From the NCBI GenBank assembly GCA_002269645.1, contig NIVC01003064.1:1-64000 (forward strand): a stretch of DNA of 64,000 nt. Reading direction: 5' to 3'. Below, piece by piece: positions 13,052 to 64,000 of the stretch (position 1 is the first letter of the stretch; the number at the start of each line of letters is the position of its first letter). A program made the position numbers and the translations under genes. This stretch comes from Macrostomum lignano. Lineage: Eukaryota. The notes below the pieces were generated by a model. The model saw only the letters and a program-made list of their open reading frames with translations. It made no database searches and had not been told where the DNA came from.

Positions 13052-13116
13052 CAGGGCTGCCGGTTGTCTAGAAAAGCCCCTCCTACTGGGCCGGTTTCTC
13101 CCCACTACCCGATCCC

Positions 13117-13122
13117 TTTATA
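13117..13122 (-). promoter_or_regulatory. TATA box of the lectin gene
   Basis: TATAAA on the minus strand, 66 nt upstream of ATG 13051. Confidence 0.6.
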
Positions 13123-14009: not shown

Positions 14010-14725
14010 GGAGAAGGAAGTCAGAAGAGTAAGAGATTTGAAAAAAATGAAGCAACTTGAAACTCTTAAGAGCAGTGCTGCAGATTGAAGCAAACGCAGT
14101 GTTTAAAACAGGTAAACAAAACATGTAGACAGCGCGCATAGCACTCAATGTATTTACTGTCAAAACATGTGACAGTAATTACATTGTTCTGATATTAGTC
14201 ATTTAAACGTGCGGAACGAGCAGAAACAATCGGCCTGGCTCGCTGTCAATCTAAATGATGCAAGATATCACAGGCTGCTGTACACAGCTGTCCGGCGGTT
14301 TGGCACTTCCTGTGCTGTGCAGCTGCACTCGGCTGGTGCCAACGATCGCACAATAAAATTAGTGGCGACTTTGTACAAAATTATTTCCAACCGGAAACTG
14401 GGCGGGAAAATGCGCGCGCAGATCGAACAGCGAATACGAAAGCTACTGCAACAGGTACAGGTAAAAATAATCTTTCCAGGAATCAGCCGATAATTCTTGA
14501 AGCCACAGGGTCAGAGAAATCGCTGGGGGGGAATTGTGTAAGAAAGGTCGCAGACTTAAAGTACATCAAACTACCAATAAATTTGCTAATCAGCTGTTGA
14601 TTGAAACAAGCGCAATCGAGCTGAGCTGGGACAGTTTAAAGGAAGCTGAGAAAAGCGTGGAAGCACAGTGTGAATACTGCTGTGGCTCACTGAATTCAGT
14701 GAGAACTGGATGAGCATGAGCAGTA

Positions 14726-15258
14726 TTACCGTTGCTATGCACCCGGTAACTATAGAGAAATTATCGTTGCTATGCACCTGGTAACTATAGAGAAATTATC
14801 GTTGCTATGCACCCGGTAACTATAGAGAAATTTTACTTGCTATGTACTCGGTATCCATGGAGACATTGTCGCTGCTATGCATCCGGTAACTATGGAGAAA
14901 TTATCGTTGCTATGCATCCGGTAACTATGGAGAAATTATCGTTGCTATGCACCCGGTAACTATGGAGAAAATATCGTTGCTTTGCACCCGGTAACTATGG
15001 AGAAATTATCGTTGCTATGCACCCGGTAACTATGGAGAAAATATCGTTGCTATGCACCCGGTAACTATGGAGAAATTATCGTTGCTATGCACCCGGTAAC
15101 TATGGAGAAATTATCGTTGCTATGCACCCGGTAACTATGGAGACATTATCGTTGCTATGCACCCGGTAACTATGGAGACATTATCGTAGCTATGCACCCG
15201 GTAACTATGGAGACATTATCGTTGCTATGCACCAAGTATCCATGGAGACATTATTGTT
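14726..15258. repeat. 35-bp minisatellite immediately downstream of the NACHT/TPR stop codon
   Basis: Unit TTATCGTTGCTATGCACCCGGTAACTATGGAGAAA at 14761, 14796 and onward. Confidence 0.95.
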
Positions 15259-15268
15259 AGCGCCCCAG

Positions 15269-15739
15269 TCAGTCCCTCAGGGTCAGGGTAGCCAGCATGT
15301 CGCTGACAACTTCGTCCACTCCGTCATCGTCGGCCATTGCCGAGGCCGAAGCTGCGGTGCCATCGCCGGACGCCTCGTCCTCCTCCGACGGCAGCTGGTC
15401 TTCGTCCAGCAGCACGAAGTCGTCCTCCGAAGCCGCCGCGGCGCCTTGCGACACCGACGAGGTGGCGAAGAAGCTGCCCAACGGATTTCCCATGCCGCCG
15501 GAGTCGACGGCGCCAGCGCTGTCGTCGTCCTCCTGGAGCTCGCGCTGGCTGAACTCGGCCTCCTGCTCGGGCCCGACCTCGGCGGAGTGCAGGTGCCGCA
15601 GGTACAGCGCGGCCCGGCGGTAGCGAGGCTCCAGCAGCACGGAAGCCGCGCGGCAGGTCTTGGGGTGGTCGGGCCCGTACACCAGCTGAATCACTTCCGC
15701 CCAGCGCCGGAAGTACATGTAGGCGCGCAGGAAGCAGGA
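15269..15739 (-). CDS. NACHT/TPR gene exon 9 (last TPR + acidic tail)
   Basis: gtccag|SCFLRAY..YGPDHPKT..TLTLRD*, 471 nt. Confidence 0.85.
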   Translation of the reverse strand, partial: SCFLRAYMYFRRWAEVIQLVYGPDHPKTCRAASVLLEPRYRRAALYLRHLHSAEVGPEQEAEFSQRELQEDDDSAGAVDSGGMGNPLGSFFATSSVSQGAAAASEDDFVLLDEDQLPSEEDEASGDGTAASASAMADDDGVDEVVSDMLATLTLRD

Positions 15740-35100: not shown

Positions 35101-37564
35101 ACGCCAAGACAAAAAAAATTATGGAAGCGTCATGTAAACAATCATACAAGCGTCATGTAAACAATCATAGAAGCGTCATGTAAACAATCATAGAAGCGTC
35201 ATGTAAAAATCATAGAAGCGTCATGTAAAAATCATAGAAGCGTAATGTAAACAATCATAGAAGCGTCATGTTAAAATCATAAAAAGCGTCATGTAAAAAA
35301 TCATAGAAGCGTCATGTAAACAATCATACAAGCGTCATGTAAACAATCATAGAAGCGTCATGTAAAAATCATACAAGCGTCATGTAAACAAGCATAGAAG
35401 CGTCATGAAAAAATTATAGAAGCGTAATGTAAACAATCATAGAAGCGTCATGTTAAAATCATACAAGCGTCATGTAAACAATCATACAAGCGTCATGTAA
35501 ACAATCATAGAAGCGTCATGTAAAAAAATCATAGAAGCGTCATGTTAAAATCATAGAAGCGTCATGTAAACAATCATAGAAGCGTCATGTAAACAATCAT
35601 AGAAGCGTCATGTAAAAATCATAGAAGCGTCATGTAAAAATCATAGAAGCGTCATGTAAACAATCATAAAAGCGTCATGTAAACAATCATAGAAGCGTCA
35701 TGTATACAATCATAGAAGCGTCATGTAAACAATCATAGAAGCGTCATGTAAAAATCATAGAAGCGTCATGTAAAAATCATAGAAGCGTCATGTAAAAATC
35801 ATAGAAGCGTCATGTAAAAATCATAGAAGCGTCATGTAAAAAATCATAGAAGCGTCATGTAAAAATCATAAAAGCGTCATGTAAAAAATCATAGAAGCGT
35901 CATGTAAACAATCATACAAGCGTCATGTAAACAATCATAGAAGCGTCATGTAAAAATCATACAAGCGTCATGTAAACAAGCATAGAAGCGTCATGAAAAA
36001 ATTATAGAAGCCTCATATAAAAACTAATGAAAGTGTGTCATTTAAAAAATTAAGAAGCATCATGGAAGAATAAAAGAAGCGTAACGTAAAAATCAAAAGA
36101 AGCGTCATGTCAGACATGAAAGAAATGTCATATAAAAATTAAATGAAGCTATAGTACAGTGCTGTGCTGGGGAGAATTACTGAGACGTCAAGGCTCACAG
36201 AGAATAACTGAGATTACAGGGGGGTTTCTGAGATGTTAAAGCAAAAGTCAGAAGCTACTTCAAAGTACATGTACTTTACTTAAGTTTTTTATTGCATTCT
36301 TTGTTGGCTTGCCACGGTGGGGGAGGGCGCTGATAGAAGAAGAGTCATGTAAAAATAAAAGGAGCACTATGTATACATAAAATAAAAGTCATGTCAAAGT
36401 TAAAAGATTCATTTGGGAATTGCTACGATGTCAAAGCTTGGAGGGAATCGTTATAGTGCTGTGATTCTTAAAGAAGGAATCACTTAAATGCCAAGGCTTA
36501 GGGAAGAAGAATTGCTGTGATTTCAAGGCTTTAGGTTGGGTGAAAGTTAGGTTTACGTCAGGTTTGGGTTGAGGGTTAGATTTTAGCGCGTTTCAAGGTT
36601 AACAGGGGATTTTTTAGATTTCAAGGTTTATGGGGGCCATCGCTGACATGTCAAGGCTTACGGGGGGGGAATAGCTGAGATGCCAAGGCTCACTGGGGTA
36701 TAAATGAGATTTCAAGGCTAAAGCCAGAAGCTACATGTAGTTTATTGAAAACTTTTTATTACATTATTTGATGCCTCCTCAGGGGAGGGATCGCTGATAA
36801 AAAAGCGTAATGTAAAAAATAAAAGAAGCTTCATGTCGAAGTTAAGAGATTCATTTGGGAATCCCTACGATGTCGAGGCTTGCAGGGAATCGCTATAATG
36901 CTGTAGTAGTGCTATAGACTCTTAGAGAGAATTACTGAAATTTCAATGCTTTAGGGTTAGGGTTAGGGTTAGGGTTAGGGTTAGAAAATAGACAGATTTT
37001 TTAAGATTTCAAGGCTTGTGGGAGCATTGCTGAGATGTCAAGGGGGGAGTTGATATGTTAAGGCTTGTGGGGGGGATTGCTGACATGTCAAGGCTTACAA
37101 GGGTACTGGTAGCGTACTGAAGCATACTGGTAGAAGTAGCTCTGAAAGAAGGCAAGTATGGTTGAATTTCAATGTCTGTTATAAAATTCTGCACAAACAT
37201 GTTTTATTGGTACATAAGCCTGGAATTAAAATGAGAATTCGATTCCTAGCCCCCCTCCCTAAGAATTTTTTTTCATTTAAAAGGATTCGTCCCTTGCTTA
37301 TTGGCCACCCGAAGGCCATTTTTTATCAAAAATGATAAAAATAATTTTTATCAAACACGTTGACATATACAGGGCTCTAAACTAAAAACTGTAAAAAGTT
37401 GATAGTTTTGTTTTACCTAAAATGCGTTATTAACGATCTCCAAAAATTCCTATTTTAAGCTTAAGCTTAAGAAAAACACTTAAAGTACTCCTGCTAAAAG
37501 GTATATTATATTAGACGAATATTAATTTTTTCTGCTCCCCGAAGGGGGGCAAAACTTTAGCTAG
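29107..37564 (+). mobile_element. Helitron unit H2 (8458 bp)
   Basis: 5' TCTAATATACTAAAA. 3' GCTCCCCGAAGGGGGGC-N10-CTAG. Confidence 0.8.
29779..34716. repeat. 24-bp dimeric satellite (48-bp period) with higher-order structure, copy A
   Basis: CCAAGGATTACTGCACTCGATAAG alternates with CCAAGGATTATTGCTATTAATAAA. Confidence 0.97.
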
Positions 37565-38261
37565 TCTAATATACTAAAAATGAAATGCTTGGTTGCTTGC
37601 TTGTAATTGATTTTCTCCCGAACGGCTCAACCGATTTTCTTCAAACTTGCACCATTCGATCAGAAATTTTCCCGGGACGGTACATGCATATTGGCTAAGA
37701 AATTGCTCAATGTTAAAGGGATTAAATATTCGAAAAACATGATTTTTTGCAAAGGTCAAGCAGCTCTTTCGACCTGAAATGCATTGTAAGAATGCTAGAG
37801 AAAAAACTGACTGACTGAATTCCGATTGTGATAAAGATTGCATCACAACAAGTTGAAAACAATGCCGAACAAATGCACACAAAACTTGAATGAAATTGCG
37901 TAACCATATTGCCAACTTAAATTGAGACTGATACTGGCTGACTGAGAAATTGATTATGTCATAATTTTTTACTCCAATTGACTTGCTGTAAGAATTGAAT
38001 TATAAGGGCCACAATTCATGTTCTCCAATTGAAAAGAGATAGCCAAGAAAGATGCGAACAGACTGGACTGCTACTGTAGATGATGGAATAGCCGATGTGT
38101 AGGCACTAGGAATTGGTTATAGGCTCGGCTAGGGTTCGATTCTGCACTGCGTCAAATTTCAGCCAGTAGTGATTGAAGATTATTTAAATTTATTTTTTTC
38201 ATTCACTTCGTAAATAAAATATTATCTGACTTTGAATCATTGCAAAAATAGAGCTTGAATC

Positions 38262-39765
38262 AGACTAAACCAGAGTTTAAATCATGGCTAAACCAGAGTC
38301 TGAATCATGGCTAAAACCAGTGTTTGAATCATGGCTAAACCAGAGTCTGAATCATGGCTAAACCAGAGTCTGAATCATGGCTAAAACCAGTGTTTGAATC
38401 ATGGCTAAACCATTGTTTGAATCATGGCTAAACCAGAGTTTAAGTCATGGCTAAACCATCGTTTGAATCATGACTAAACCAAAGTTTGAATCATGGCAAA
38501 ACCAGAGTTTGAATCATGGCTAAACCATTGTTTGAATCATGACTAAACCAGAGTTTGAATCGTGGCTAAACCATCGTTTGAATCATGACTAAACCAAAGT
38601 TTGAATCATGGCAAAACCAGAGTTTGAATCATGGCTAAACCAAAGTTTGAATCATGGCAAAACCAGAGTTTGAATCATGGCTAAACCATCGTTTGAATCA
38701 TGGCTAAAACCAGTGTTTGAATCATGGCTAAACCAGAGTCTGAATCATGGCTAAACCAGAGTCTGAATCATGGCTAAAACCAGTGTTTGAATCATGGCTA
38801 AACCATTGTTTGAATCATGGCTAAACCAGAGTTTAAGTCATGGCTAAACCATCGTTTGAATCATGACTAAACCAAAGTTTGAATCATGGCAAAACCAGAG
38901 TTTGAATCATGGCTAAACCATTGTTTGAATCATGACTAAACCAGAGTTTGAATCGTGGCTAAACCATCGTTTGAATCATGACTAAACCAAAGTTTGAATC
39001 ATGGCAAAACCAGAGTTTGAATCATGGCTAAACCAAAGTTTGAATCATGGCAAAACCAGAGTTTGAATCATGGCTAAACCATCGTTTGAATCATGGCTAA
39101 ACCAGAGTTTAAGTCATGGCTAAACCATCGTTTGAATCATGACTAAACCAGAGTTTGAATCGTGGCTAAACCATCGTTTGAATCATGACTAAACCAAAGT
39201 TTGAATCATGGCAAAACCAGAGTTTGAATCATGGCTAAACCAAAGTTTGAATCATGGCAAAACCAGAGTTTGAATCATGGCTAAACCATCGTTTGAATCA
39301 TGGCTAAACCAGAGTTTGAATCATGGCTAAACCAAAGTTTGAATCATGGCAAAACCAGAGTTTGAATCATGGCTAAACCATCGTTTGAATCATGGCTAAA
39401 CCAGAGTTTGAATCATGGCTAAACCAGAGTTTAAGTCATGGCTAAACCATCGTTTGAATCATGGCTAAACCAGAGTTTGAATCATGGCTAAACCAAAGTT
39501 TGAATCATGGCAAAACCAAAGTTTGAATCATGGCAAAACCAGAGTTTGAATCGTGGCTAAACCAGAGTTTGAATCATGGCTAAACCAAAGTTTGAATCAT
39601 GGCAAAACCAAAGTTTGAATCATGGCAAAACCAGAGTTTGAATCGTGGCTAAACCATCGTTTGAATCATGACTAAACCAGAGTTTGAATCATGGCTAAAC
39701 GAGAGTCTGACTCATGGCTAAACCAGAGTTTGAATCATGGCTAAACCAGAGTTTGAATCATTGCA
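38262..39765. repeat. 23-bp satellite TTTGAATCATGGCTAAACCAGAG (H3)
   Basis: Direct reading. Confidence 0.95.
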
Positions 39766-40038
39766 AAACCAGTTTTGTTAAAAGTGATACTGATTATCAC
39801 TGATATTGATGATATCACTGATATCAGTGATACTGGTAACTCTGATAAGAATTTCACTATGTCAAAAGTACATAGCTGTATCAACCCCACTGGCGAGACA
39901 GTCATAAATAGATTACATTCACAGTTTTTTTCACTGGCTGGCGCAGACCAGTGTACATTGTGAGCCCTCTGCCCCGGAATTTGGACACACGGGCCTGGAG
40001 AGCCCACACCCCAAATCATAGGTTTTTTAGATTTAGAC

Positions 40039-40900
40039 CACAGATACTATAAACACTAGATAGGCCACTCCAGCTAATTTTCACAACACGACAGTTTACT
40101 CTACTTTCTGCTTAGTAGTAGTAAAAACATTTTAGCGTTATTTATATTTTTTTAAAATAAAAAAACAGATGAATGCAATGCAGCAATTGTATTGATTTTT
40201 TGCAAAAAGAAACTTATAATTATACTTTCCACAATTCAAAGCAACATTGTGAATGCTTTAGATTGCATAGAAGGCTATATTATTGCAGTCTACTATTGTA
40301 TATTTAGCAAATACGAGCTATATCATATACTCCATAATCCATATTCGTGAAGCAAAATAGAAAGATTTCTCATCTTAATCAGCTCATCTGTTTGTGAAAC
40401 TCGCAGCGTGCTGTCGAAGAACAGGGTCGCCAGTCGCCCTTGTTCAGAGGCAGCATTCAGAACGGCCCAACAGATGAAAAAAACTGGCGAATGCGCCACT
40501 TCAAGGTCCAGGGATGTATCCGATGGAGCCAATCCTCAGTGGTTTCGTAACAGGCAGCCGATAAGCAGCAGGACTTTTGTGGTGCAGCTGCAATGAGCTG
40601 CTGATGAGATGACATCCTTTGACCAGAGCACCCCTGACTGCGAGCGCCCTGCCGCCCAGTCGACCGCTGGAAGCTGCGCTAGCCACGCCTCCACAGTCCA
40701 TGGATGCACGACTGCGCTGCACTTGCCTTGACCATCGAGAGTTGCCGCTGCAGCCGCTTGATTTGCCTGTCGCTTTCGGGATTGCCGCTGCAGCCGCTTG
40801 ATTTGCCTGTCGCTTTCGGGATTGCCGCTGCAGCCGCTTGATTTGCCTGTCGCTTTCGGGATTGCCGCTGCAGCCGCTTGATTTGCCTGTCGCTTTTGTC
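40039..40900 (-). mobile_element. Truncated copy of the P element (one TIR only)
   Basis: ATTTAGAC|CACAGATACTATAAACAC at 40031-40056. It is cut at the duplication junction. Confidence 0.85.
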
Positions 40901-41375
40901 ACTTTTTATTACATTATTTGATGCCTCCTTAGGGGAGGGATCGCTGATAAAAAAGCGTAATGTAAAAAATAAAAGAAGCTTCATGTCGAAGTTAAGAGAT
41001 TCATTTGGGAATCCCTACGATGTTGAGGCTTGCAGGGAATCGCTATAATGCTGTAGTAGTGCTATAATGACTCTTAGAGAGAATTACTGAAATTTCAATG
41101 CTTTAGGGTTAGGTTAGGGTTAGGGTTAGGGTTAGGGTTAGGCTAGGGTTAGAAGGTTGACAGATATTTTTAGATTTCCAAGGCTTATTGGGGGCATTGC
41201 TGAGATGTCAAGGGGGGAAGTTGATATGTTAAAGCTTGTGGGGGGGGATAACTGACATGTCAAGGCTTACAAGGTTTGACAGAAGATTTTTCAAGATTTC
41301 AAGGATACATGTAGCTTATTAAAAAAACGTGTATTGCATTTCTTTGGCTCCCCAATGGGGGGCGTAGATTGCTAG

Positions 41376-49833: not shown

Positions 49834-50530
49834 TCTAATATACTAAAAATGAAATGCTTGGTTGCTTGCTTGTAATTGATTTTCTCCCGAACGGCTCAAC
49901 CGATTTTCTTCAAACTTGCACCATTCGATCAGAAATTTTCCCGGGACGGTACATGCATATTGGCTAAGAAATTGCTCAATGTTAAAGGGATTAAATATTC
50001 GAAAAACATGATTTTTTGCAAAGGTCAAGCAGCTCTTTCGACCTGAAATGCATTGTAAGAATGCTAGAGAAAAAACTGACTGACTGAATTCCGATTGTGA
50101 TAAAGATTGCATCACAACAAGTTGAAAACAATGCCGAACAAATGCACACAAAACTTGAATGAAATTGCGTAACCATATTGCCAACTTAAATTGAGACTGA
50201 TACTGGCTGACTGAGAAATTGATTATGTCATAATTTTTTACTCCAATTGACTTGCTGTAAGAATTGAATTATAAGGGCCACAATTCATGTTCTCCAATTG
50301 AAAAGAGATAGCCAAGAAAGATGCGAACAGACTGGACTGCTACTGTAGATGATGGAATAGCCGATGTGTAGGCACTAGGAATTGGTTATAGGCTCGGCTA
50401 GGGTTCGATTCTGCACTGCGTCAAATTTCAGCCAGTAGTGATTGAAGATTATTTAAATTTATTTTTTTCATTCACTTCGTAAATAAAATATTATCTGACT
50501 TTGAATCATTGCAAAAATAGAGCTTGAATC

Positions 50531-51920
50531 AGACTAAACCAGAGTTTAAATCATGGCTAAACCAGAGTCTGAATCATGGCTAAAACCAGTGTTTGAATCA
50601 TGGCTAAACCAGAGTCTGAATCATGGCTAAACCAGAGTCTGAATCATGGCTAAAACCAGTGTTTGAATCATGGCTAAACCATTGTTTGAATCATGGCTAA
50701 ACCAGAGTTTAAGTCATGGCTAAACCATCGTTTGAATCATGACTAAACCAAAGTTTGAATCATGGCAAAACCAGAGTTTGAATCATGGCTAAACCATTGT
50801 TTGAATCATGACTAAACCAGAGTTTGAATCGTGGCTAAACCATCGTTTGAATCATGACTAAACCAAAGTTTGAATCATGGCAAAACCAGAGTTTGAATCA
50901 TGGCTAAACCAAAGTTTGAATCATGGCAAAACCAGAGTTTGAATCATGGCTAAACCATCGTTTGAATCATGGCTAAAACCAGTGTTTGAATCATGGCTAA
51001 ACCAGAGTCTGAATCATGGCTAAACCAGAGTCTGAATCATGGCTAAAACCAGTGTTTGAATCATGGCTAAACCATTGTTTGAATCATGGCTAAACCAGAG
51101 TTTAAGTCATGGCTAAACCATCGTTTGAATCATGACTAAACCAAAGTTTGAATCATGGCAAAACCAGAGTTTGAATCATGGCTAAACCAAAGTTTGAATC
51201 ATGGCAAAACCAGAGTTTGAATCATGGCTAAACCATCGTTTGAATCATGGCTAAACCAGAGTTTAAGTCATGGCTAAACCATCGTTTGAATCATGACTAA
51301 ACCAGAGTTTGAATCGTGGCTAAACCATCGTTTGAATCATGACTAAACCAAAGTTTGAATCATGGCAAAACCAGAGTTTGAATCATGGCTAAACCAAAGT
51401 TTGAATCATGGCAAAACCAGAGTTTGAATCATGGCTAAACCATCGTTTGAATCATGGCTAAACCAGAGTTTGAATCATGGCTAAACCAAAGTTTGAATCA
51501 TGGCAAAACCAGAGTTTGAATCATGGCTAAACCATCGTTTGAATCATGGCTAAACCAGAGTTTGAATCATGGCTAAACCAGAGTTTAAGTCATGGCTAAA
51601 CCATCGTTTGAATCATGGCTAAACCAGAGTTTGAATCATGGCTAAACCAAAGTTTGAATCATGGCAAAACCAAAGTTTGAATCATGGCAAAACCAGAGTT
51701 TGAATCGTGGCTAAACCAGAGTTTGAATCATGGCTAAACCAAAGTTTGAATCATGGCAAAACCAAAGTTTGAATCATGGCAAAACCAGAGTTTGAATCGT
51801 GGCTAAACCATCGTTTGAATCATGACTAAACCAGAGTTTGAATCATGGCTAAACGAGAGTCTGACTCATGGCTAAACCAGAGTTTGAATCATGGCTAAAC
51901 CAGAGTTTGAATCATTGCAA
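50531..51920. repeat. 23-bp satellite TTTGAATCATGGCTAAACCAGAG (H5), 115 bp (5 units) shorter than the H3 copy
   Basis: The duplication offset drops from 12269 to 12154 across this array. Confidence 0.95.
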
Positions 51921-52479
51921 AACCAGTTTTGTTAAAAGTGATACTGATTATCACTGATATTGATGATATCACTGATATCAGTGATACTGGTAACTCTGAT
52001 AAGAATTTCACTATGTCAAAAGTACATAGCTGTATCAACCCCACTGGCGAGACAGTCATAAATAGATTACATTCACAGTTTTTTTCACTGGCTGGCGCAG
52101 ACCAGTGTACATTGTGAGCCCTCTGCCCCGGAATTTGGACACACGGGCCTGGAGAGCCCACACCCCAAATCATAGGTTTTTTAGATTTAGACCACAGATA
52201 CTATAAACACTAGATAGGCCACTCCAGCTAATTTTCACAACACGACAGTTTACTCTACTTTCTGCTTAGTAGTAGTAAAAACATTTTAGCGTTATTTATA
52301 TTTTTTTAAAATAAAAAAACAGATGAATGCAATGCAGCAATTGTATTGATTTTTTGCAAAAAGAAACTTATAATTATACTTTCCACAATTCAAAGCAACA
52401 TTGTGAATGCTTTAGATTGCATAGAAGGCTATATTATTGCAGTCTACTATTGTATATTTAGCAAATACGAGCTATATCA

Positions 52480-53700
52480 TATACTCCATAATCCATATTC
52501 GTGAAGCAAAATAGAAAGATTTCTCATCTTAATCAGCTCATCTGTTTGTGAAACTCGCAGCGTGCTGTCGAAGAACAGGGTCGCCAGTCGCCCTTGTTCA
52601 GAGGCAGCATTCAGAACGGCCCAACAGATGAAAAAAACTGGCGAATGCGCCACTTCAAGGTCCAGGGATGTATCCGATGGAGCCAATCCTCAGTGGTTTC
52701 GTAACAGGCAGCCGATAAGCAGCAGGACTTTTGTGGTGCAGCTGCAATGAGCTGCTGATGAGATGACATCCTTTGACCAGAGCACCCCTGACTGCGAGCG
52801 CCCTGCCGCCCAGTCGACCGCTGGAAGCTGCGCTAGCCACGCCTCCACAGTCCATGGATGCACGACTGCGCTGCACTTGCCTTGACCATCGAGAGTTGCC
52901 GCTGCAGCCGCTTGATTTGCCTGTCGCTTTCGGGATTGCCGCTGCAGCCGCTTGATTTGCCTGTCGCTTTCGGGATTGCCGCTGCAGCCGCTTGATTTGC
53001 CTGTCGTTTTCGGGATTGCCGCTGCAGCCGCTTGATTTGCCTGTCGCTTTCGGGATTGCCGCTGCAGCCGCTTGATTCGCCTGTCACTTTCGGGATTGCC
53101 GCTGCAGCCGCTTGATTCGCCTGTCACTTTCGGGATCGTTGCTGCAGCCGCTTGATCTTTGCCTCTAGCGCTTGGAACCCGCGAATCGGCTGCAGAGGTG
53201 AGAGCTTTCAGCCGCAACAGCTGTTCTCGGCGCAGAATCTGGTAGCCGAAGGTTGCTCTGCCACAGCACTGGCAGCAGGCAAGTCGCAGGCTCGGCTGCA
53301 GATAGATTGCTAATTGGCCCCAGCACTGGAGGGTACATGTCGTCTGCCTCTTCATCGTTTATCAGTCCTTTGCACAGAGGGTAGCTGGTCTATTTGAACG
53401 AGCCGAGGCAGCATCAACTCTTGGTGTGGGATTGCGTCCCAGCGAAAACAGATGTCTTGCACATCCGTGGCACTTTGTAAGGCAGCAGTAGGCCTCGTCC
53501 ATAAAGTGCAAGCTGAACACACGGAGGCCCCGTGATTTAATTGTTTATAAAGATCAATATCCACGCTCCTGTAGTAGCTGCTGCCAGCGCTTCGCCAGTG
53601 TCATCTTTTGGTAATTTATGCATTCGCAACGGATTTTTCTTTCTCGGATGTTAATAGCACTAGTACAAAGCTCGTGCAAGTGGGAGCACAGCAGTGGTTC
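52480..53700 (-). pseudogene. Decayed THAP + P-element transposase N-terminal region
   Basis: Across frames it reads NHCCAPTC, MHKLPKDD, KRWQQLL and S.HFMDEAY (THAP). It continues with a coiled-coil LEAKIKRLQ, GVLWSKDVISSA and GRLATLFFD. Confidence 0.7.
52895..53150. repeat. 40-bp tandem repeat inside the P transposase remnant, about 6-7 copies
   Basis: GCCGCTGCAGCCGCTTGATTTGCCTGTCGCTTTCGGGATT. Confidence 0.92.
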
Positions 53701-54403
53701 GAATCAAAACATTTCTCGAGTACAAGATTAGATAGAAAAGCTAGTATGCACTCGAACTTTCTTTAACTCTGACTCTTGTCCTGTTCATCTATATAAGCTT
53801 GTATTTAAGCACGATTCGCCACCCCCAAATTTTCTAACCCACAACCTCTCAACCCCCACCCCACCCCTAACCCAGGCTAGCTATGTGCAGTCCTTTATTT
53901 TCTATCCCACCACCAGTAGGCCTAAATTATCGATCCACTCACCCTGCCTTATACGAAACTGATATTAACCCTATTCCAGACTACCCCCTTCCTCCACTTT
54001 GAAAGATAGCGGCATTGCACACTGTCTGTCGCGTCTTAATGTACACCATTACTGCACAAAACAAGTTAGTTGTTTATGGCGTTAGCAAAACGATGTCTTA
54101 AAAACAGTCACTCGATTTGTCTAATTTAGCAAATAATACTGTTGCTTCCTTTCATTGCTACTAAGCAGAAAGTAGAATAAAAAACTTGCCCAGAAAATTA
54201 GCCTGAGTGGCCTATCTAGTGTTTATAGTATCTGTGATTTAGACCCCTTTCTTCTTTATCGATTTTTCAGTTTCTACCCTGCGTCTTAAGATAAGCTCCA
54301 ATTCAGCCCACTGGATGATAAATAGCCTGTAATAGTTTGGCTCAAGGGCACCTTATCTGATTCTTCAGACATCCAAATTCACAAACTTTCATCTTTCAAA
54401 CCT

Positions 54404-55478
54404 TAGAATCTCTTAGATCCCAATCCTAAATTCATAGAATCTCTTATATCCCAATCCTAAATTCACAGAATCTCTTAGATCCCAATCCTAAATTCACAGA
54501 ATCTCTTAGATCCCAATCCTAAATTCATAGAATCTCTTAGATCCCAATCCTAAATTCACAGAATCTCTTAGATCCCAATCCTAAATTCATAGAATCTCTT
54601 ATATCCCAATCCTAAATTCATAGAATCTCTTAGATCCCAATCCTAATCTCATAGAATCTCTTAGATCCCAATCCTAATCTCATAGAATCTCTTAGATCCC
54701 AATCCTAAATTCATTGAATCTCTTAGATCACAATCCTAAATTCACAGAATCTCTTAGATCCCAATCCTAAATTCACAGAATCTCTTAGATCCCAATCCTA
54801 AATTCACAGAATCTCTTATATCCCAATCCTAAATTCATTGAATCTCTTAGATCCCAATCCTAATCTCATTGAATCTCTTAGATCCCAATCCTAAATTCAT
54901 AGAATCTCTTAGATCCCAATCCTAAATTCATTGAATCTCTTAGATCCCAATCCTAATCTCATTGAATCTCTTAGATCCCAATCCTAAATTCATAGAATCT
55001 CTTAGATCCCAATCCTAAATTCACAGAGTCTCTTAGATCCCAATCCTAAATTCATGGGATCTCTTAGATCCCAATCCTAAATTCATAGAATCTCTTAGAT
55101 CCCAATGCTAAATTCTTAGAATCTCTTAGATCCCAATCCTAAATTCACAGAATCTCTTAGATCCCAATGCTAAATTCAGAGAATCTCTTAGATCCCAATC
55201 CTAAATTCATAGAATCTCTTATATCCCAATCCTAAATTCTTAGAATCTCTTAGATCCCAATCCTAAATTCATAGAATCTCTTAGATCCCAATCCTAAATT
55301 CACAGAATCTCTTAGATCCCAATGCTAAATTCACAGAATCTATTAGATTCCAATCCTAAATTCATAGAATCTCTTAAATCCCAATCCTAAATTCATAGAA
55401 TCTCTTAGATCCCAATCCTAAATTCATAGAATCTCTTAGATCCCAATCCTAAATTCACAGAATCTTATATATCAATCC
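54404..55478. repeat. 31-bp satellite AGAATCTCTTAGATCCCAATCCTAAATTCA(C/T) (also 59706-60038)
   Basis: Period 31 read directly (54421, 54452). Confidence 0.95.
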
Positions 55479-56402
55479 TAGATCATTGCTTAGCCTAATT
55501 GGGTTCATTGCATAACAGAACTAAGATCATTGCTTAGCGTAATTGGGATCATTTGGCATAACTAAGTTGGGATCCTTGCATACTAAATTGGGATCAAGGC
55601 AAACCAGAATAGGATCGGATACAATCGGATCCCAATTTAGTTGTGCCATGAAAGTTAATAAGTAATAGTGAAATTAATGTAGGTAAATATTAGGTGAATA
55701 TATAGCAGGTTGGCTGCATATCAATGGGCCTTGAGATTGTGGTTGAAATAACGTGTTCGCTGCTTTTTCACGATTCAGAGGTTCTTCCACTCTAAAACTG
55801 AGGGTATGCAGCCATGAGAGAGAGGTTTGAAGCAGCTTCAGCAAACCTAGAGACTTGTGATAGCTAAGCTTTTTGTGTGACGTTGAGTGCGTGAACTTAA
55901 CTTGCCCCAGTGAATGCCTCTGACCAGCAGTGCAGAGTAAAGCAAGCCAACAAGCAGTAGGATTGACACCATTATTCTTGCAGTCAAATGCAATGAACTG
56001 TGCAATGATACTGTCTTGTTGGCGGAGCAATCTGCGAATTCATCATCTCTACTGTCTTTGTAAGTAAGTATTCACAAAGCAATTATTAAACTCATCAGTT
56101 GTCATTGAATTCCCTTATTTATAATATGTTATTTTGCATACTTTCATATGGATGTTTGTTTAGTTAAAAACTTTCAATTAAGCTCCAAAACTTCATTTTA
56201 GGTTCTAAATTGATCATAGCAATGAGCTGTGTCAGTTAAGTTTCTTATTTTCATTTAGGAGTAAGAAAAAGCAACACGAAACACTTATTTATCCAGTAAA
56301 CAGAATTATTTATTTTATTTATTTAGAATTCTTTAAATTCTCAAACACATAAATAAAAAAATCAAGAAATCATATCAAGTTAATTCCACAAACAAATTGA
56401 AT

Positions 56403-56433
56403 TTAATTATTCCGCTGCTGCTGCTGCTGCGGC

Positions 56434-56477
<44 letters not shown>

Positions 56478-56478
56478 C

Positions 56479-56522
<44 letters not shown>

Positions 56523-56764
56523 CTGCTGCTGCAGCCGCATGTCGGCCAGGTCCGGACACCGGGCCACAGGGTGACCTCCACCGCAGAGATAACAGGCCAC
56601 TGTTAAGTTTGGAAAGTGCAATTTTACTCAACAGGTGGTTTCGAAAGACTTAATTACAGTAATGAGACTTAGAAATGAGACTTACTAGGTTTTCTAGGGT
56701 GTCCACCACCGCGGCCTCCTCGCCGCCTGCCGCCGCCGGAAAAGAAGTTCTGGGTAAACTTCAT
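56403..56764 (-). CDS. Two-exon 91-aa microprotein: RGG-rich + CX2CX3HX4C zinc knuckle + polyQ
   Basis: Exon 1 56764-56686 (79 nt) reads MKFTQNFFSGGGRRRGGRGGGHPRKP|gtaagt. An 86-nt intron ends ttaacag. Exon 2 56599-56403 reads MACYLCGGGHPVARCPDLADMRL-Q33-P-Q5-RNN*. The frame joins exactly (276 nt). TATAAA at 56838-56843, CCAAT at 56877-56881 and AATAAA at 56309-56314 are all on the minus strand. Confidence 0.75.
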
Positions 56765-57581
56765 TTGTGGAACAGTGGAGTTAAACAGTGGAACTATACA
56801 GTGGAAATTATACGAGCGTGTCGTACGCTCACTCTGGTTTATATACGCTCACTCATGTCAAGCAAGGATTAGCGAGATTGGTTTGAAAACCTTGCTAACG
56901 AAATGAAACTCATTTCATTTTTTTAAAGCCCGTTTCAGCTTAGGCAAAAATGAATACCAGCTTAGGGCCACCCCCAACCCCAGTTAAAATCGTGTGAGGC
57001 TTCATTGGTGAGCGTCATGAGGCTTTAGCTGTTTGTGATTACTGAAAAGTCGCACTAGGTTGGGGCTTGCACTGGCAGTTTAATGAAATCACTTTAGTTG
57101 AATACAAAGTTTACTGCTATTGGCTGACTTGAAACCCTCTATTTTTAGCCACGTTAGCCACACGCCGCACTGGCTTCCCAATTACAGTGTACATTTAAGA
57201 TCTTTTTTGTGTCCTATTATTGAAGTGTGTCGAAAACAGATTGCATAACAAGTCGCACCACACTCGACTCTGACACCCCACACAGTGTACATAAAGAAAG
57301 AACGTAAAAGCTAAGGCAATCACCAGCCAATCCACAACAAGTAGCCCAGTGGGTGGATTAGAACAAAACTCTCTCTGATTGGTTAGCCAGATCTAAATTG
57401 ATCTTTACATGGCACCCTCTATTGGCATGAGTCATCACAGTTAGGGTTGTCCGAAACGAAATGCTGCAATATAAACTGGCACAATTGGCCTTGATGCTAA
57501 AACTATCAAACCACAAACCGTAAAGACCTTATCAGTGAAATTTTTATAATCCATATTTTTGGCAACTATCAATCGAGCAAT
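56765..57581. promoter_or_regulatory. Candidate bidirectional promoter
   Basis: Minus TATA at 56838-56843 and plus TATAAA at 57470-57475. CCAAT/ATTGG at 56877, 57327, 57378 and 57421. TGAGTCA at 57428-57434. Confidence 0.55.
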
Positions 57582-58990
57582 ATGGAGTCAACCGAAGGAG
57601 CCAAGAAAAGCAAAGCGTGTATCTCTGCTCTGCTTCCGGGCCTGATGCACGCTGCAATCGTTGGCCTCGTAATGAGGCTGTCCAAAATCACGGACTTTGA
57701 AGGCAAAAGAGGACCAGGCCAAGTGTTTTCCTTTATCCTCTGTGACGACACCGGCGATATACGTGTAAGCGTGTTCGGAAAGGATCTTAAGCCTTTCCTG
57801 GAGGTGTGTCGTGAGGGCGTCGCCGTCCGCATATCCGGCGGCTGGGTGAAGAAGGCGGATCCCAAATACAGCACTACGGACAATGAGCACGAGCTAACAG
57901 TTTCAATTGACCAACGTGGAACCATTGTGAGGACCCTCGAGACCGTCACTCGACGTGCACCAAGCTATAAGAAGATAAAAGAGATTTCGGACTGTGAAAT
58001 GAAAATGTAAGTTAACTTGTTGCAATTGTTAAAAATAAAATGGAAAGGATTTGGAATATATATTCCCACTAAATGTTAGGTTAGCCAATTATTTCTAGGG
58101 AAACTTATTTAAATCAGTCAGTGAAGTTGCTTAGTGAATGAGTTAATGCATTCTTGTAAGTTCACCCTTTGCCTCACATATCTCAGGAATGTTAACGTCT
58201 ATGGCACGATTTCTGCTGTCCAGAAACCAACGGAAGTTAAAACCGGTTCCGGAAAACTCATCAACCTGGCGAAAGTGACGCTTGTTGATCAGTCTGGGTC
58301 CTCCGTGTCGTGCACATTTTGGGCCAGCTCTACTGCCCAAGTGAATGACTGGTCTGTGGGCGACGTTCTAGCGATTCATGGTGCTCAAGTCCAGGAATAT
58401 TCCCAGACAATCAGTCTCGGATGTTCGAAAGCGGAAATTCAGCATTGGCCAGAAGACTCTGCTGATGTCTCCGACATTACCCAGTGGTACAAGGATGCGC
58501 TTTCTAGCCAACAGTGCTTCGAGGAGCTACGGGTGACGCAAAGCTCCCAGCGGGAGAAATATGCTAACCGTGACGACGAAATGGTATTACAGTACCCAGA
58601 GCGAATGTTCGACCAATTCGATGAGGTGCGAAGAATTAAAGTGCGATTTGGGGACAAAGAGGTAAGTTGATTTTACGAGTATTACGTGTGGGTTAAATAG
58701 AAATATGGTGTCAGAGAACGTACTAAAGAAGCAATAAGTGATTGACTGCTTAGATTCATTATTAACTTGTTCAATGAGGCCTCTTATCTCTAAAGATTAG
58801 GTTTATTCATTCATTCAAGAGTAATATGAATATAAAAAATTGATTAAATTCATATATAAATTTCATTTCACAGGTGACATTTTCCCGAGATCATATCAAC
58901 AGAAGTCAGCAGATCCCCGCTATGTCAACCCCTAAGGCTCCCAATGTGTCCGAGAAGCCTGGGCCATCACATGATTTCATGGACGAGTAG
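57582..58990 (+). CDS. RPA1-like: Three-exon RPA70-like ssDNA-binding protein (DBD-A + DBD-B OB folds only), 338 aa
   Basis: Exons 57582-58006, 58187-58661 and 58874-58990; both donors gtaagt, 1017 nt open. Motifs GQVFSFILCDDTGDIRVSVF, VKKADPKYSTTDNEHE, VTLVDQSG..VSCTFW, VLAIHGAQVQEY and TQWY match RPA70 DBD-A/B. AATAAA lies at 59004-59009. Confidence 0.88.
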
Positions 58991-59204
58991 GACTTGAAAG
59001 ACTAATAAAGATGCAATTAACGTGAGTAATGCTTGAGTGCATTTTTGTCTGCCAGTAGCGCATCTGAGTTCGATAGCCATCTCAAGTAGTTTAACCTGAT
59101 ATGTATAATACGGCCCGATGAGACGTATCAGGTAAATCCTGCTTTATTCACCTAATAAATTAAAATTAGATGGGATCATAATGGAATTGGGATCAGTGAT
59201 TAGC

Positions 59205-60700
59205 TAAGCAAAATGATTAGCTAAATTGTGTTCATTGCATAACAGAACTGAGATCATTGCTTAGCGAAATTGGGTTCATTGCATAACAGAACTGAGATCA
59301 TTGCTTAGTTAAATTGGGTTTATGGCATTACAGAACTGAGATTCAAGGGGGTTGTAGCCTAGTGGTTAGGGCGTCGGACTCACGACTTGAAGGTCGGGGG
59401 TTCGATTCCCGATCCCTCTGCAACAATTTGTGTCCTTGAGCAAGACACTTAACTCTGCGTTGCTTCAGTTTACCCAGCTGTAAAATGGGTACCAGCATTA
59501 GCTGGGGTAATTGAGGGTGTGTGTGGCGACCCCCCAGTCCTTGGACTGAACAGCTGTACGCAGCCTTCAGATGCGCCGCGCAATAGCTGCGGCTGAGCTG
59601 TCGGTTGCACATCTGCCCATTGGGCAGGTGTAATCAATTATTATTATTATTAGAACTGAGAGCATTGCTTAGCTAAATTGGGTTCATTGCTTGTTCATTG
59701 GGTTCACAGAATCTCTTAGATCCCAATCCTAAATTCACAGAATCTCTTAGATCCCAATCCTAAATTCACAGAATCTCTTAGATCCCAATCCTAAATTCAT
59801 AGAATCTCTTAGATCCCAATGCTAAATTCTTAGAATCTCTTAGATCCCAATCCTAAATTCACAGAATCTCTTAGATCCCAATGCTAAATTCACAGAATCT
59901 ATTAGATTCCAATCCTAAATTCATAGAATCTCTTAAATCCCAATCTTAAATTCATAGAATCTCTTAGATCCCAATCCTAAATTCATAGAATCTCTTAGAT
60001 CCCAATCCTAAATTCACAGAATCTTATATATCAATCCTAAATCATTGCTTAGCTAAATTGTGTTTGTGGCATAACAGAAGTGAGATCATTGCTTAGCTAA
60101 ATTGTGTTTGTGGCATAACAGAAGTGAGATCATTGCTTAGCCTAATTGGGTTCATTGCATAACAGAACTAAGATCATTGCTTAGCGTAATTGGGATCATT
60201 TGGCATAACTAAGTTGGGATCCTTGCATACTAAATTGGGATCATAGCAAACCAGAATTGGAATTATCGCATAATGAAATTGGGCTCATGGCATGATACGA
60301 ATGGGATCATTGAAGAATGGAAAATTGGATTCATAGTTTACCAGAATTATGATTAGTAAGAGGGGCGTCCGTAAGGTAATGAAAATTTTCTGCTACGAGT
60401 TGGGATCAAGGCAAACCAGAATAGGATCGAATTGGGTTCCCAATAGCCAATTGGGTTCCCAACCCAATAGCTAAATTGTGTTTGTGGCATAACAGAAGTG
60501 AGATCATTGCTTAGCTAAATTGTGTTTGTGGCATAACAGAAGTGAGATCATTGCTTAGCCTAATTGGGTTCATTGCATAACAGAACTAAGATCATTGCTT
60601 AGCGTAATTGGGATCATTTGGCATAACTAAAATGGGATTATTGCATAACTAAATTGAGATCCTTTCATAACTAGATTGAGATCATTGCATAACTAGATTG
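59205..60700. repeat. ~43-44 bp degenerate satellite (CATAACAGAACTGAGATCATTGCTTAGCTAAATTGGGTTCATTG) flanking the SINE and the 31-bp array
   Basis: Units at 59210-59340, 60040-60230 and 60470-60700, with related units at 55480-55620. Confidence 0.8.
59342..59651 (+). mobile_element. Full-length tRNA-derived CORE-type SINE (310 bp)
   Basis: A/B-box head at 59347-59410, CORE-like TGTGTCCTTGAGCAAGACACTTAAC..TCAGTTTACCCAGCTGTAAAATGGG at 59429-59489, and an (ATT)n tail. The 10-bp TSD AGAACTGAGA lies at 59332-59341 and 59652-59661. Confidence 0.9.
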
Positions 60701-61138
60701 GGATCAAGGCAAACCAGAATAGGATCGGATACAATCGGATCCCAATTTAGTTGTGCCATGAAAGTTAATAAGTAATAGTGAAATTAATGTAGGTAAATAT
60801 TAGGTGAATATATAGCAGGTTGGCTGCATATCAATGGGCCTTGAGATTGTGGTTGAAATAACGTGTTCGCTGCTTTTTCACGATTCAGAGGTTCTTCCAC
60901 TCTAAAACTGAGGGTATGCAGCCATGAGAGAGAGGTTTGAAGCAGCTTCAGCAAACCTAGAGACTTGTGATAGCTAAGCTTTTTGTGTGACGTTGAGTGC
61001 GTGAACTTAACTTGCCCCAGTGAATGCCTCTGACCAGCAGTGCAGAGTAAAGCAAGCCAACAAGCAGTAGGATTGACACCATTATTCTTGCAGTCAAATG
61101 CAATGAACTGTGCAATGATACTGTCTTGTTGGCGGAGC
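60700..61138. repeat. Near-identical copy of about 55590-56028
   Basis: GGGATCAAGGCAAACCAGAATAGGATCGG through CTTGTTGGCGGAGC matches in both places. Confidence 0.9.
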
Positions 61139-64000
61139 CTTCTGCAAGTGCATCATGTTTACTGTTTGTGGGTAATATTTTTAGGTGCAATGCAATTTTT
61201 TCTTTTTTCATTGAACTGAATCCCATTACTGTCCCATTACTGTCGTTTTCTGACATTACTCAGTAGTCACAACTTGTTTCTGTCGAAAAAATAATTTAAC
61301 AAACGAAAGAGGAAAATCGCTGAATTCTCTACATTTGGAGTTTGTTTTCTTATAATGTCATAATGATGTGTATTTGTATAATAATAATTTTGCCAGATGC
61401 TCACTCAATTGTTGTTGTTTTGTTGTTTTCAATGTGTTTTGCAATTGAAGAAATACAAAAAATGTTTCAGTGGACAAAGACCAGTCCCATGATTCATGAA
61501 TCTGCACACCTGGTACCTGCCTTATTCTATTTTAAAAGATAAATTGTCAGGCATGCATTTGTAATGAAGAATGATACAAAATGGATTACTAAGAAAAGAG
61601 GTCAGATGAGAAATAGGATCTGATCAGAACTGGAATCATTAAGAAAAAGAAAGGATATTAGAAATTGATCCATTGATATTTAATTAGCCATTGATATGAG
61701 CTAACCATTTTGAACTATCAAAATGGATCTAATTTGAAATAGACTTTTATGTCATATAGGATTTGATTCAAAATAAGATTTGACAATGTGAATGAGGCAT
61801 ATAAGAAAAGAGAAGTCTGCTGAGGAGTGTGACTAGAAAAGAAAGGGGGAATTTAGCATGATAATATATATCATATATCATGCCTATATATAGCCAATGT
61901 TAGCTTTATTAAAAGTGTCAAACCAAAGGTCGAAGGATGTAGCTCCAGTTGCTTTTGCAAAGTCCATTCACAATGAGATAGCTGCATTGAACTGACTCTT
62001 TAAGTCATTTATTATAATAAGAGGGGCCTCATTCAAGGGCAATAGTTGCAATGCTGAGCTACTTATTGTTCGGAACATTGCAGTCGCAGTTAGTACGATG
62101 AGCAGGGCTAAGAAATTCACTTACAAATGAAGAAAGTAAAAAATTTCTCGGGATGTGTATAAAACTGTAGTACACATGAGCAATACAAGCAACAAGAAAA
62201 TCGGAATAAAGCAAGTCATTTCTCGGAAAGTCGCAATTTCTTGGAATATTATTTAATTTATTTTCAGTAACAACTAAAAAAGTGATCTCAACAGTTTTAT
62301 AAACTAAATAAATAAAATAATTTTTATCAAACACGTTGACATATACAGGGCTCTAAACTAAAAAACTGTAAAAAGTTGATAGTTTTGTTTTACCTAAAAT
62401 GCGTTATTAACGATCTCCAAAAATTCCTATTTTAAGCTTAAGCTTAAGAAAGACACTTAAAGTACTCCTGCTAAAAGGTATATTATATTAGACGAATATT
62501 AATTATTTCTGCTCCCCGAAGGGGGGCAAAACTTTAGCTAGTTATTAATTCTGTTTGTGGACGCGATCATTGAGCTCTTGACAATCCTTGGTATCAGTTG
62601 CAGGCGGATTTGTGTAGTGTCTTGATCGGTAGATAAAGTGAAACTTTTTTATATTTACTGTAAATTTATTCAATGTATGTATAGTCACCAGGTCTATTAA
62701 TGTAAAGCCAAATTACTATTTTTATAGGGGCCTAGTTAGTCATTGTTTGAATTGGAATAGAATATATTTCATTAATATTATGGTTAATATTAAGTTATTA
62801 GCTATGATCAATGACAATAACAAGGACCATTAGAAGTTACCACTGACATCGGCCTATCATTATTCTATGCTTCAAAACTTATAAATATAATGTATGATGG
62901 CAGAAAGCTATTGTATTAGTAGTAGTAGTAGTAGTAGTGGTAGTAATAGTATAATTATGGCCAAAATGTTTTATCATAGACAAACTCACTGACTAAAAGC
63001 TAAAACCTATCTAAGTAATGCTTTTTGAGAGTACCAGTCATTTCAATGACAAGTTGTTTTAGTGATAGATGTTTCAATGGCAAAAATCATTTTGGCATGA
63101 TTTTGCCATGCTTTTCTCTTTGACTTTGACACTTTGTGATAGACACACTTCATTTTTGATGGAAAATTAAATATTTCATAAGTATAATCATTTTAGTGAT
63201 AAGAGGCACTTTATAATATTAGTGTGTAATTATTTTGTGAAGATTTATATTTTATACATATATTTATAAATTTCTATCAAAATATTAATATATTTAAAAA
63301 AAGAAATCAAACTAATTATATTGTTTTCTTTTGTGCAAATTGTTTTGAATTGTTCTAAATATTCAGAATATTCAAACATATACATATGCAACCCTGATTT
63401 ATACTGATTATATGACTAACTTTTTGACCAAAAATGTGATTTACCTATGAACGAAATGCTAATAAAAATTAATGCAATTTGGATAAATGGCAGAAATACT
63501 GCCTTATTAAGGCTAAATACCCCATCATATAATTAGTACTACTTAGGAGGTTCAACCCCTAGCTTTTTATAGGAAGTCACTGGAGACCTGGTTTAAGCAG
63601 CTAGAATCACAATTTACCCTATTGGAATAAGTTGACAAAATGCGGACAACTGTCTGTCGCATTTTTGGATTCTCCTGCTGTCGCGTTGCGTGACAGTGGT
63701 GTCAAGTGGTGTGTCACGTCGCGCGACACTGGAAACCTGGTGTCGTCATGCGTCGTGTCGCGTGACACGACACAACGAGACGCGTAAGTGTGGCAACTTG
63801 GCGGCTAGTGTCATCATGTGTTGCATTGCGGCCTAGATCTGCATCCAAAACCTCGCAAACTGTGTTTCATTGTAATATGTTCACAGTTGTTTCTCGGTAT
63901 TTAAATGTTTCAAACATGTTTGATAAAAACTAATTCTTGAATTGTTCTTTTTTATTTTGACTGTAAAATAACTAATACTTTAAATATAATTTCTAGAAAG

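Follow-up and report, generated by a model that had tools for sequence, protein, structure and literature searches.

The Macrostomum lignano contig NIVC01003064.1 (assembly GCA_002269645.1) carries, in the 64,000-nucleotide stretch analysed here (hereafter, the window), two small genes that face away from each other across a common spacer. The plus-strand gene encodes a protein related to the DNA-binding core of RPA70 (RPA-like), and the minus-strand gene a short basic protein with a Cys-Cys-His-Cys knuckle. Both lie between a Helitron 5' end and the next Helitron 3' end, in a unit devoid of Rep/helicase sequence, and the same head-to-head pair recurs inside Rep/helicase-bearing Helitrons of M. 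lignano. The pair is probably a Helitron accessory module that has been kept in a transposase-less element comparable to the rice Mothra elements.

The RPA-like gene

The plus-strand gene starts at the ATG at 57582, and its three exons encode 338 amino acids. Both introns read GTAAGT...AG, and an AATAAA lies 3' of the stop codon (59004-59009).

57582-58006, plus strand: RPA-like gene exon 1; oligonucleotide/oligosaccharide-binding (OB) fold corresponding to DNA-binding domain A (DBD-A) of RPA70 (Pfam tRNA_anti-codon, 6e-14), aligning to proteins P0001 and P0002 and to the structure 1JMC
58187-58661, plus strand: RPA-like gene exon 2; DBD-B OB fold and start of the conserved C-terminal region (Pfam REPA_OB_2, 2e-12)
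58874-58990, plus strand: RPA-like gene exon 3, ending in a TAG stop; EVTFSRD...STP...GPSH conserved

The closest proteins are from M. lignano; the window-type protein itself is absent from the protein collection searched. The three-exon model is backed by end-to-end alignment, short exon 3 included, with the annotated M. lignano proteins P0001 (63% identical to the window protein) and P0002 (44%), and the homologue at locus L001 has the same layout, with a middle exon of equally 475 nt. A profile of the family matches the crystal structures of human RPA70 DBD-A/B (1JMC) at E 5e-21 over about 210 residues. Residues F65, Y96, W187 and Y213 are invariant across the family and align with F238, F269, W361 and F386 of RPA70, the DNA-stacking residues known from the 1JMC structure. 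The protein thus resembles human RPA70 (1JMC, 1FGU) in its tandem OB folds and in the conservation of the four stacking aromatic positions. Unlike RPA70, it starts about 25 residues ahead of DBD-A, without the N-terminal OB fold (DBD-F), and no Pfam match to Rep_fac-A_C (DBD-C, the zinc ribbon) was found in its 338 residues, and the canonical trimerisation core is therefore missing; Rep_fac-A_C is present in P0013, a relative of the cellular type. The C-terminal 110 or so residues match no known domain, and they are constrained like the OB folds: the ratio of nonsynonymous to synonymous substitution rates (dN/dS) is 0.14 in this tail and 0.16 for the gene, at a saturated synonymous divergence (dS) of 1.67. 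An AlphaFold2 model built from a three-sequence alignment had a predicted local distance difference test (pLDDT) score of 38 and was unusable. Altogether, the gene is best described as encoding a Helitron-type RPA-like protein with tandem DBD-A and DBD-B only and a conserved C-terminal tail of about 110 residues, a protein that would be expected to bind single-stranded DNA (ssDNA).

Given its homology to RPA70 DBD-A/B, the plus-strand gene could also be regarded as an ordinary cellular RPA1 paralogue that happens to lie head-to-head with an unrelated neighbour, the more so as cellular RPA1s are the next-best matches after the Macrostomum clade. This seems very improbable. An exhaustive hidden Markov model (HMM) search places the protein in a small clade made up almost entirely of Macrostomum sequences plus one trematode protein, ordinary 600-residue RPA1s scoring far below this clade. 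In the tree, the Macrostomum sequences likewise form a single clade, apart from cellular RPA1, in which the window protein clusters with proteins encoded beside Helitron helicases. The lack of the N-terminal OB fold and of Rep_fac-A_C/DBD-C also speaks against a cellular RPA1.

The top match to the profile (E 1e-203) is P0004, a gene model of 4022 amino acids from the trematode Calicophoron daubneyi (CAL8082275.1) with 26 consecutive REPA_OB_2 domains, which represents a giant array of OB folds unless the annotation has fused genes that lie in tandem; no Rep/helicase domain was found in it.

The knuckle gene

The minus-strand gene starts at the ATG at 56764 and encodes 91 amino acids in two exons. 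Its product reads MKFTQNFFSGGGRRRGGRGGGHPRKPMACYLCGGGHPVARCPDLADMRL followed by about 40 glutamines, that is, a basic RGG stretch, one knuckle and a polyglutamine tract.

56764-56686, minus strand: knuckle gene exon 1, MKFTQNFFSGGGRRRGGRGGGHPRKP; aligns with the exon MKIINNFYGSPSPFGRRRRRGGREGKKK of locus L006
56685-56600, minus strand: knuckle gene intron, GT-AG, phase 1, 86 nt; splits a codon 2 residues ahead of the first Cys
56599-56403, minus strand: knuckle gene exon 2, (M)ACYLCGGGHPVARCPDLADMRL, then polyglutamine, RNN and a TAA stop

The knuckle itself, CYLCGGGHPVARC, has the spacing C-x2-C-x3-H-x4-C, one residue below the canonical one. Membership of Pfam zf-CCHC (PF00098) is defined by the spacing C-x2-C-x4-H-x4-C together with a score above the gathering cutoff. 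The window and L006 knuckles, both with x3 spacing, have no match to this family, and the knuckle of the L001-type loci has the canonical x4 spacing yet reaches only 12.8 bits, below the cutoff of 20.8. The zinc-knuckle partner proposed in an earlier reading made from the sequence only is therefore retained as a conserved C-C-H-C motif, but one with non-canonical spacing and outside zf-CCHC.

The odd spacing, the lack of any Pfam match or database homologue and the fact that about half of the open reading frame (ORF) is polyglutamine might suggest a spurious, non-coding ORF generated by a CAG repeat. The comparison with L006, a 2.7-kb contig from another sequencing run whose RPA-like gene is about 50% identical to that of the window, makes this hardly credible. 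L006 keeps the knuckle as TCYLCAGPHPVRRCPALA with nearly all codons synonymously changed; all four codons of its CYLC motif differ in this way (TGT TAT CTC TGC in the window, TGC TAC CTT TGT in L006). Over the gene, the proportions of nonsynonymous (pN) and synonymous (pS) differences are 0.26 and 0.86, and the amino acids are thus conserved despite saturated synonymous change. Also conserved are the phase-1 intron, the basic tract and, at the start of the protein, the motif MK(F/I)xxNF(F/Y). The gene is under purifying selection; the minus-strand ORF thus codes for a real protein, and its x3 knuckle is a conserved variant and not a product of decay. The protein may bind zinc.

The spacer between the two genes

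56765-57581, no strand: putative shared divergent promoter region, 817 bp, with a TATA on each side, eight CCAAT pentamers and one TGAGTCA

The sequence-only reading had described two ATGs facing away from each other, each with its own TATA and with a TGAGTCA and four CCAAT boxes between them. The divergent arrangement of the ATGs at 56764 (minus) and 57582 (plus) is borne out, as are both TATA elements and the TGAGTCA. The minus-side TATA is TATATAAAC on the minus strand (around 56838-56846, about 75-80 nt ahead of its ATG), the plus-side TATAAA lies at 57470, 112 nt ahead of its own, and the TGAGTCA occurs once in the spacer, at 57428. The CCAAT boxes are present in twice the claimed number: eight pentamers (56877, 57004, 57119, 57178, 57327, 57378, 57421 and 57484), of the NF-Y type, as with AACCAATCAGA at 57378. 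The mean over 2000 shuffles is 1.7, and none of them reached eight. Nowhere else in the window, tandem-repeat arrays aside, is this density matched. In layout, the spacer resembles a CCAAT/NF-Y-type bidirectional promoter: the head-to-head genes are less than 1 kb apart and CCAAT boxes are enriched.

The spacers of the three lineages in which the pair occurs (see below) measure 817, 918 and 866 bp. RRCCAATCA boxes are found in all three (the window; L001, L007 and L009; L006), and a TATA 'GCAATATA...' stands 110-112 nt ahead of the RPA-like ATG both in the window and in L001. Sensitive blastn between the spacers, introns and flanks of the window and L001 returned low-complexity matches only; since the spacers are unalignable, promoter homology is a matter of motifs and not of alignment. 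TGAGTCA was considered as a conserved element and rejected, being absent from L001, L006, L007 and L009. In the M. lignano annotation of L009, genes are called at both positions of the pair. It seems likely that the two genes are transcribed divergently from this CCAAT/TATA spacer of about 0.8-0.9 kb, and they may be co-regulated.

Recurrence of the pair in Helitrons

Beyond the window, the pair recurs in two further diverged lineages. One is made up of the M. lignano loci L001, L007, L008 and L009, whose RPA-like proteins form the 90% cluster of P0001 and share 63% of their amino acids with the window protein; the other is L006. Synonymous sites are saturated between the three lineages. In L001, L007, L008 and L009 the knuckle, CRFCLRRGHIAAEC followed by arginine/serine (RS) repeats, is encoded upstream of the RPA-like gene on the opposite strand, and in L006 the equivalent position holds TCYLCAGPHPVRRCPALAKQRQQQ..., after the exon MKIINNFYGSPSPFGRRRRRGGREGKKK. 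The knuckle of the pair is the only CCHC-like motif in the six frames of the window, L001, L008, L009 and L006; L007 has one further match to the regular expression, in a stop-ridden frame (2184-2225), which was taken as chance. A phase-1 intron is common to the three lineages, its split codon lying 2-3 residues ahead of the first Cys. Judging from the tree, the knuckle and RPA-like genes were linked before these lineages split, and the two-gene module is old and maintained by selection. The recurrence of the knuckle gene in three saturated lineages already contradicts the chance neighbourhood invoked above for a cellular RPA1. The alternative arrangement, with a knuckle on the same chain as the OB folds, was looked for in relatives and rejected (0 of 167 related RPA-like proteins).

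At all four M. lignano loci of the P0001 cluster (L001, L007, L008 and L009), a 21-nt satellite follows the RPA-like gene, and beyond it lies a region with Helitron_like_N and helicase on the other strand. The L001 element is a Helitron of 14,379 bp on the minus strand, extending from TCCTATATACTAAAAATGAAA (TCCTATATACT...) at 20796 to GTCCCCCAACGGGGGGCGAAGATTGCTAG (...CCCCCAACGGGGGGCGAAGATTGCTAG) at 6418. It encodes Helitron_like_N and a PIF1 helicase, and several copies are 95-99% identical. These ends conform to the textbook hallmarks of Helitrons, a TC 5' end and a 3' CTRR preceded, at about 10-12 nt, by a G/C-rich hairpin (PMC4683698): in L001 and L009 the 3' end consists of CCCCC-AAC-GGGGG, 10 nt and CTAG, and L009 shares this end with L001 while its flank beyond is different. 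The full helicase is present in L007 and L009. In L001 and L008, a 1.17-kb deletion has removed the C-terminal half of the helicase (L001 14460-14463 versus L007 14678-15845 and L009 14528-15695).

A second type of Helitron is represented by L002, L004 and L005, in which a PIF1-type helicase ORF (PIF1, 1e-62) is followed on the same strand, after 250-540 bp, by the RPA-like gene; L004 and L005 end in CCCCCCGAAGGGGGG...GCTAG about 0.6-0.85 kb downstream of the RPA-like gene. The Rep/helicases of the L001 type (L001, L007, L009) and of the L002 type are 82-86% identical, whereas identity between their RPA-like proteins is only about 44% and the RPA-like genes have opposite orientations; the knuckle gene is found in one of the two types only. 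This disparity points to modular exchange, a recombinational swap of the accessory module between Helitron types. The accessory module has been combined with the Rep/helicase gene in differing orientations.

In M. lignano, Helitrons routinely follow one another head to tail, with the 3' CTAG of one directly abutting the TC of the next (CTAG|TC; L001 20796/20797 and 6417/6418, L004 11755, L005 11768), which suggests that they often insert in tandem or that the termination hairpin is often read through.

The unit that carries the pair in the window

49834-50181, plus strand: Helitron 5' terminus TCTAATATACTAAAAATGAAA... and 5' terminal region of about 350 nt, right behind the CTAG that ends the previous element; shares homology with the L001 Helitron's 5' end
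61691-62541, plus strand: Helitron 3' terminal region; hairpin CCCC-GAA-GGGG (62514-62524), 13 nt, CTAG (62538-62541), then T
54404-56072, no strand: flanking direct repeat, left copy; 31-nt satellite, 44-nt repeats and a unique tail
59703-61179, no strand: flanking direct repeat, right copy; 31-nt satellite, 44-nt repeats and a tail

Exact matches to TCTAATATACTAAAAATGAAA in the window lie at 29111, 37569, 41380 and 49838, corresponding to plus-strand Helitron 5' ends at 29107, 37565, 41376 and 49834, and the same motif also starts the L001 Helitron. Plus-strand 3' ends with the hairpin and CTAG lie at 29106, 37564, 41375, 49833 and 62541. The pair is thus located between the last of these 5' ends (49834) and the 3' end that follows it (62541), in a unit of 12.7 kb with the TC start and the CTRR end preceded by a G/C-rich hairpin that are canonical for Helitrons. 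Canonical Helitrons insert between A and T without target-site duplication. The 3' flank here is a T (62542); on the 5' side the flank is the CTAG of the preceding element, and the original insertion target is unreadable there. The 852 nt at 61691-62542 are 100% identical to the M. lignano contig NIVC01004209 and correspond to L001 21648-20797, where the neighbouring element that abuts the L001 Helitron has its 3' end. Satellites are also common to the window and NIVC01004209, and the window is highly repeat-rich.

No Rep/helicase similarity was found anywhere in the 64-kb window, and of the L001 Helitron only the 5' terminal region of about 350 nt is shared with it. In the absence of Rep/helicase, the unit can only be non-autonomous. 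As a unit without transposase that shares termini with a Rep/helicase-bearing family, it would qualify as 'semi-autonomous' in the sense of the Mothra mother element of rice, lying in a head-to-tail array of satellite-filled non-autonomous Helitrons. The proposal of the sequence-only reading, a co-regulated two-gene cassette travelling with a non-autonomous Helitron, is supported in part. The same head-to-head layout (817-918 bp spacer, phase-1 intron, CCAATCA) is seen in three saturated lineages, the pair resides inside Rep/helicase Helitrons with canonical termini in M. lignano, and its carrier in the window lies between Helitron ends without Rep/helicase. The 5' region of about 350 nt and the hairpin-CTAG type of end recur in the L001 Helitron and its neighbour. 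The description of neighbouring transposon ORFs as decayed in the sequence-only reading is only weakly verifiable, no Rep/helicase remnant having been found and a single sub-threshold integrase relic being present at a great distance (3459-3863).

Several observations nevertheless weigh against an accessory module kept in a mobile unit. Homology to the sister unit at 37565-41375 breaks in a 40-nt minisatellite at about 53156, and the unit 49834-62541 looks chimeric. No further copies of it were retrieved, in an analysis that included no DNA search of eukaryotic genomes, and it is a putative mobile unit only. Direct repeats bracket the pair; they are 90% identical between 55480-56072 (the tail and the 44-nt part) and 60545-61179, the blocks of 31-nt satellite at 54404-55483 and 59703-60042 matching at about 91-95%; these repeats could have arisen by duplication on the spot or belong to the carrier element's own make-up. 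The module is also inverted relative to the termini when compared with the L001-type Helitron. Elsewhere, the knuckle gene is disrupted in L007 (a 1.18-kb insertion in exon 1) and frameshifted in L009 (a C8 run), where it is annotated as a 115-residue ORF, damage that could be due to decay or to long-read indel error. L002/L004/L005-type Helitrons are without a knuckle gene, so that not every lineage requires it. In the related loci, the Rep/helicase region is split over several ORFs in that assembly, which could be explained by introns, assembly indels or decay. Finally, a profile of the window and L006 knuckle proteins returned no match at E<=10 from 5.8 billion proteins, and the knuckle protein is therefore unannotated everywhere.

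An L001-type orientation of the window unit was considered and rejected, there being no minus-strand Helitron 3' end between 52 and 56.4 kb. In the flanking composite repeat, the tail measures 450 nt, and a further partial 44-nt array is found at 59214-59342.

Accessory module or domesticated genes

The main competing explanation is that the window pair are formerly Helitron-borne genes domesticated by the host, for instance for ssDNA handling in stem cells or the germline, and now surrounded by dead Helitron debris. Both window ORFs are intact and several of their Helitron-borne paralogues are damaged; purifying selection is strong, even in the C-terminal tail; the pair comes with a TATA/CCAAT promoter region of its own; and the window has no Rep/helicase and a chimeric-looking unit around the pair. 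All of this would fit domestication. Yet the nearest paralogue resides inside multi-copy Rep/helicase-bearing Helitrons, the pair is found between 5' and 3' Helitron ends of the same terminal families, and purifying selection is equally expected of active transposon genes. Domestication is consequently an unlikely explanation, if one to be taken seriously, and the accessory module in a transposase-less, Mothra-like element is the reading preferred here.

To our knowledge, the role of Helitron RPA-like proteins has never been established. In the case of an accessory module, the RPA-like protein may coat and protect the displaced single strand during rolling-circle transposition, and the basic knuckle protein may serve as an adaptor or chaperone for nucleic acids. 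Elements with matching termini would then supply Rep/helicase in trans. The two genes would be co-expressed and would take part in transposition. More tentatively, the pair could be a portable, self-promoted 'ssDNA-handling cassette' that recombines between Helitron lineages and provides transposase-less elements with trans-acting factors, the knuckle protein replacing the zinc-bearing DBD-C of RPA70, or else the window copy could have been co-opted by the worm for genome maintenance; either version is less probable than not, though conceivable.

Relation to known systems

RPA homologues have already been described in Helitrons of plants, fish, cnidarians and flies (PMC6431247; PMC4683698), and the rice DHH_Mothra 'mother' element has an RPA-like gene, no RepHel and blocks of tandem repeats (PMC4683698; PMC6431247). 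The resemblance to Mothra is threefold: a Helitron-borne accessory gene derived from RPA70, whose product is here predicted to bind ssDNA; an element that has kept this gene but no transposase, with termini also found in a sister family that bears RepHel; and an element body full of tandem repeats. In contrast to Mothra, the host is a flatworm and not a plant, the window protein has DBD-A/B only plus a novel tail, and the Macrostomum module is found facing either way with respect to the termini. The window gene is moreover head-to-head with a knuckle gene across a shared promoter, a pairing undescribed for Mothra or in the other Helitron papers found.

The sequence-only reading had also drawn a parallel with plant RPA1 paralogues, which the literature confirms: RPA1C and RPA1E have C-terminal CCHC zinc-finger motifs on a full-length cellular RPA1 (PMC4731521; bioRxiv 10.64898/2026.01.26.701817). 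An RPA-type OB-fold protein is associated with CCHC-type motifs in both cases, but the motifs are on the same chain in plants, whereas the knuckle is encoded by a separate divergent gene here.

Among small basic zinc-knuckle proteins, retroviral nucleocapsid and CNBP are nucleic-acid chaperones, and SRSF7 combines a knuckle with an RS tail. The basic tract beside a single Cys-Cys-His-Cys knuckle recalls nucleocapsid and CNBP, and the L001-type paralogue, with canonical spacing followed by RS repeats, recalls SRSF7. The window and L006 proteins differ from all of these in their C-x2-C-x3-H-x4-C spacing, and no homology to these families was detected.

A literature search on Helitrons, CCHC and RPA found no description of a divergent knuckle partner or of such flatworm Helitrons, and one for the paralogue gene identifier Mlig007159 returned nothing. 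The 'undescribed system' suspected in the sequence-only reading must thus be narrowed, as Helitron RPA genes and RPA-only elements are known (PMC4683698, PMC6431247); all that looks undescribed is the knuckle partner, together with the divergent-promoter module. Rather than a new kind of system, the pair is an addition to what is known of RPA-bearing Helitrons. With an RPA-like gene apparently tied by a shared promoter to a second small gene for a putative nucleic-acid-binding protein, it would offer a concrete two-protein hypothesis, and its survival in a transposase-less element makes it a natural test case. It also shows that a flatworm used as a model of regeneration has canonical head-to-tail Helitrons with accessory genes, and illustrates modular exchange between the transposase and accessory parts of Helitrons.

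Other features of the window

59346-59421, plus strand: tRNA-Val(CAC)-like head of a short interspersed element (SINE), downstream of the pair; body to about 59700

The stretch 29107-53156 is a 12.27-kb tandem duplication, about 99.9% identical where compared. The duplicated segment consists of two head-to-tail non-autonomous Helitrons (29107-37564 and 37565-41375) and is repeated from 41376. The non-autonomous units are filled with 24/48-nt, 23-nt and 40-nt satellites, and each junction reads CTAG|TCTAATATACT. This Helitron array has 36% GC and follows a G+C-rich block (11000-24200, 50-63% GC) made up almost entirely of minisatellites with periods of 15-72 nt.

The ORF fragment at 3459-3863 on the minus strand matches rve_3 at E 2e-4 (21.3 bits, below the cutoff of 26.5) and is a decayed rve-type integrase relic, probably from a retroelement or a DDE transposon. 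In a Pfam scan of selected ORFs, it is the only non-Helitron transposon coding remnant seen. The tRNA-Val(CAC)-like head at 59346-59421, the sole tRNA-like match in the window, is followed by the SINE tail gtgtccttgagcaagacacttaac...cagctgtaaaatgggtaccagc, which resembles a CORE/MIR-type SINE core.

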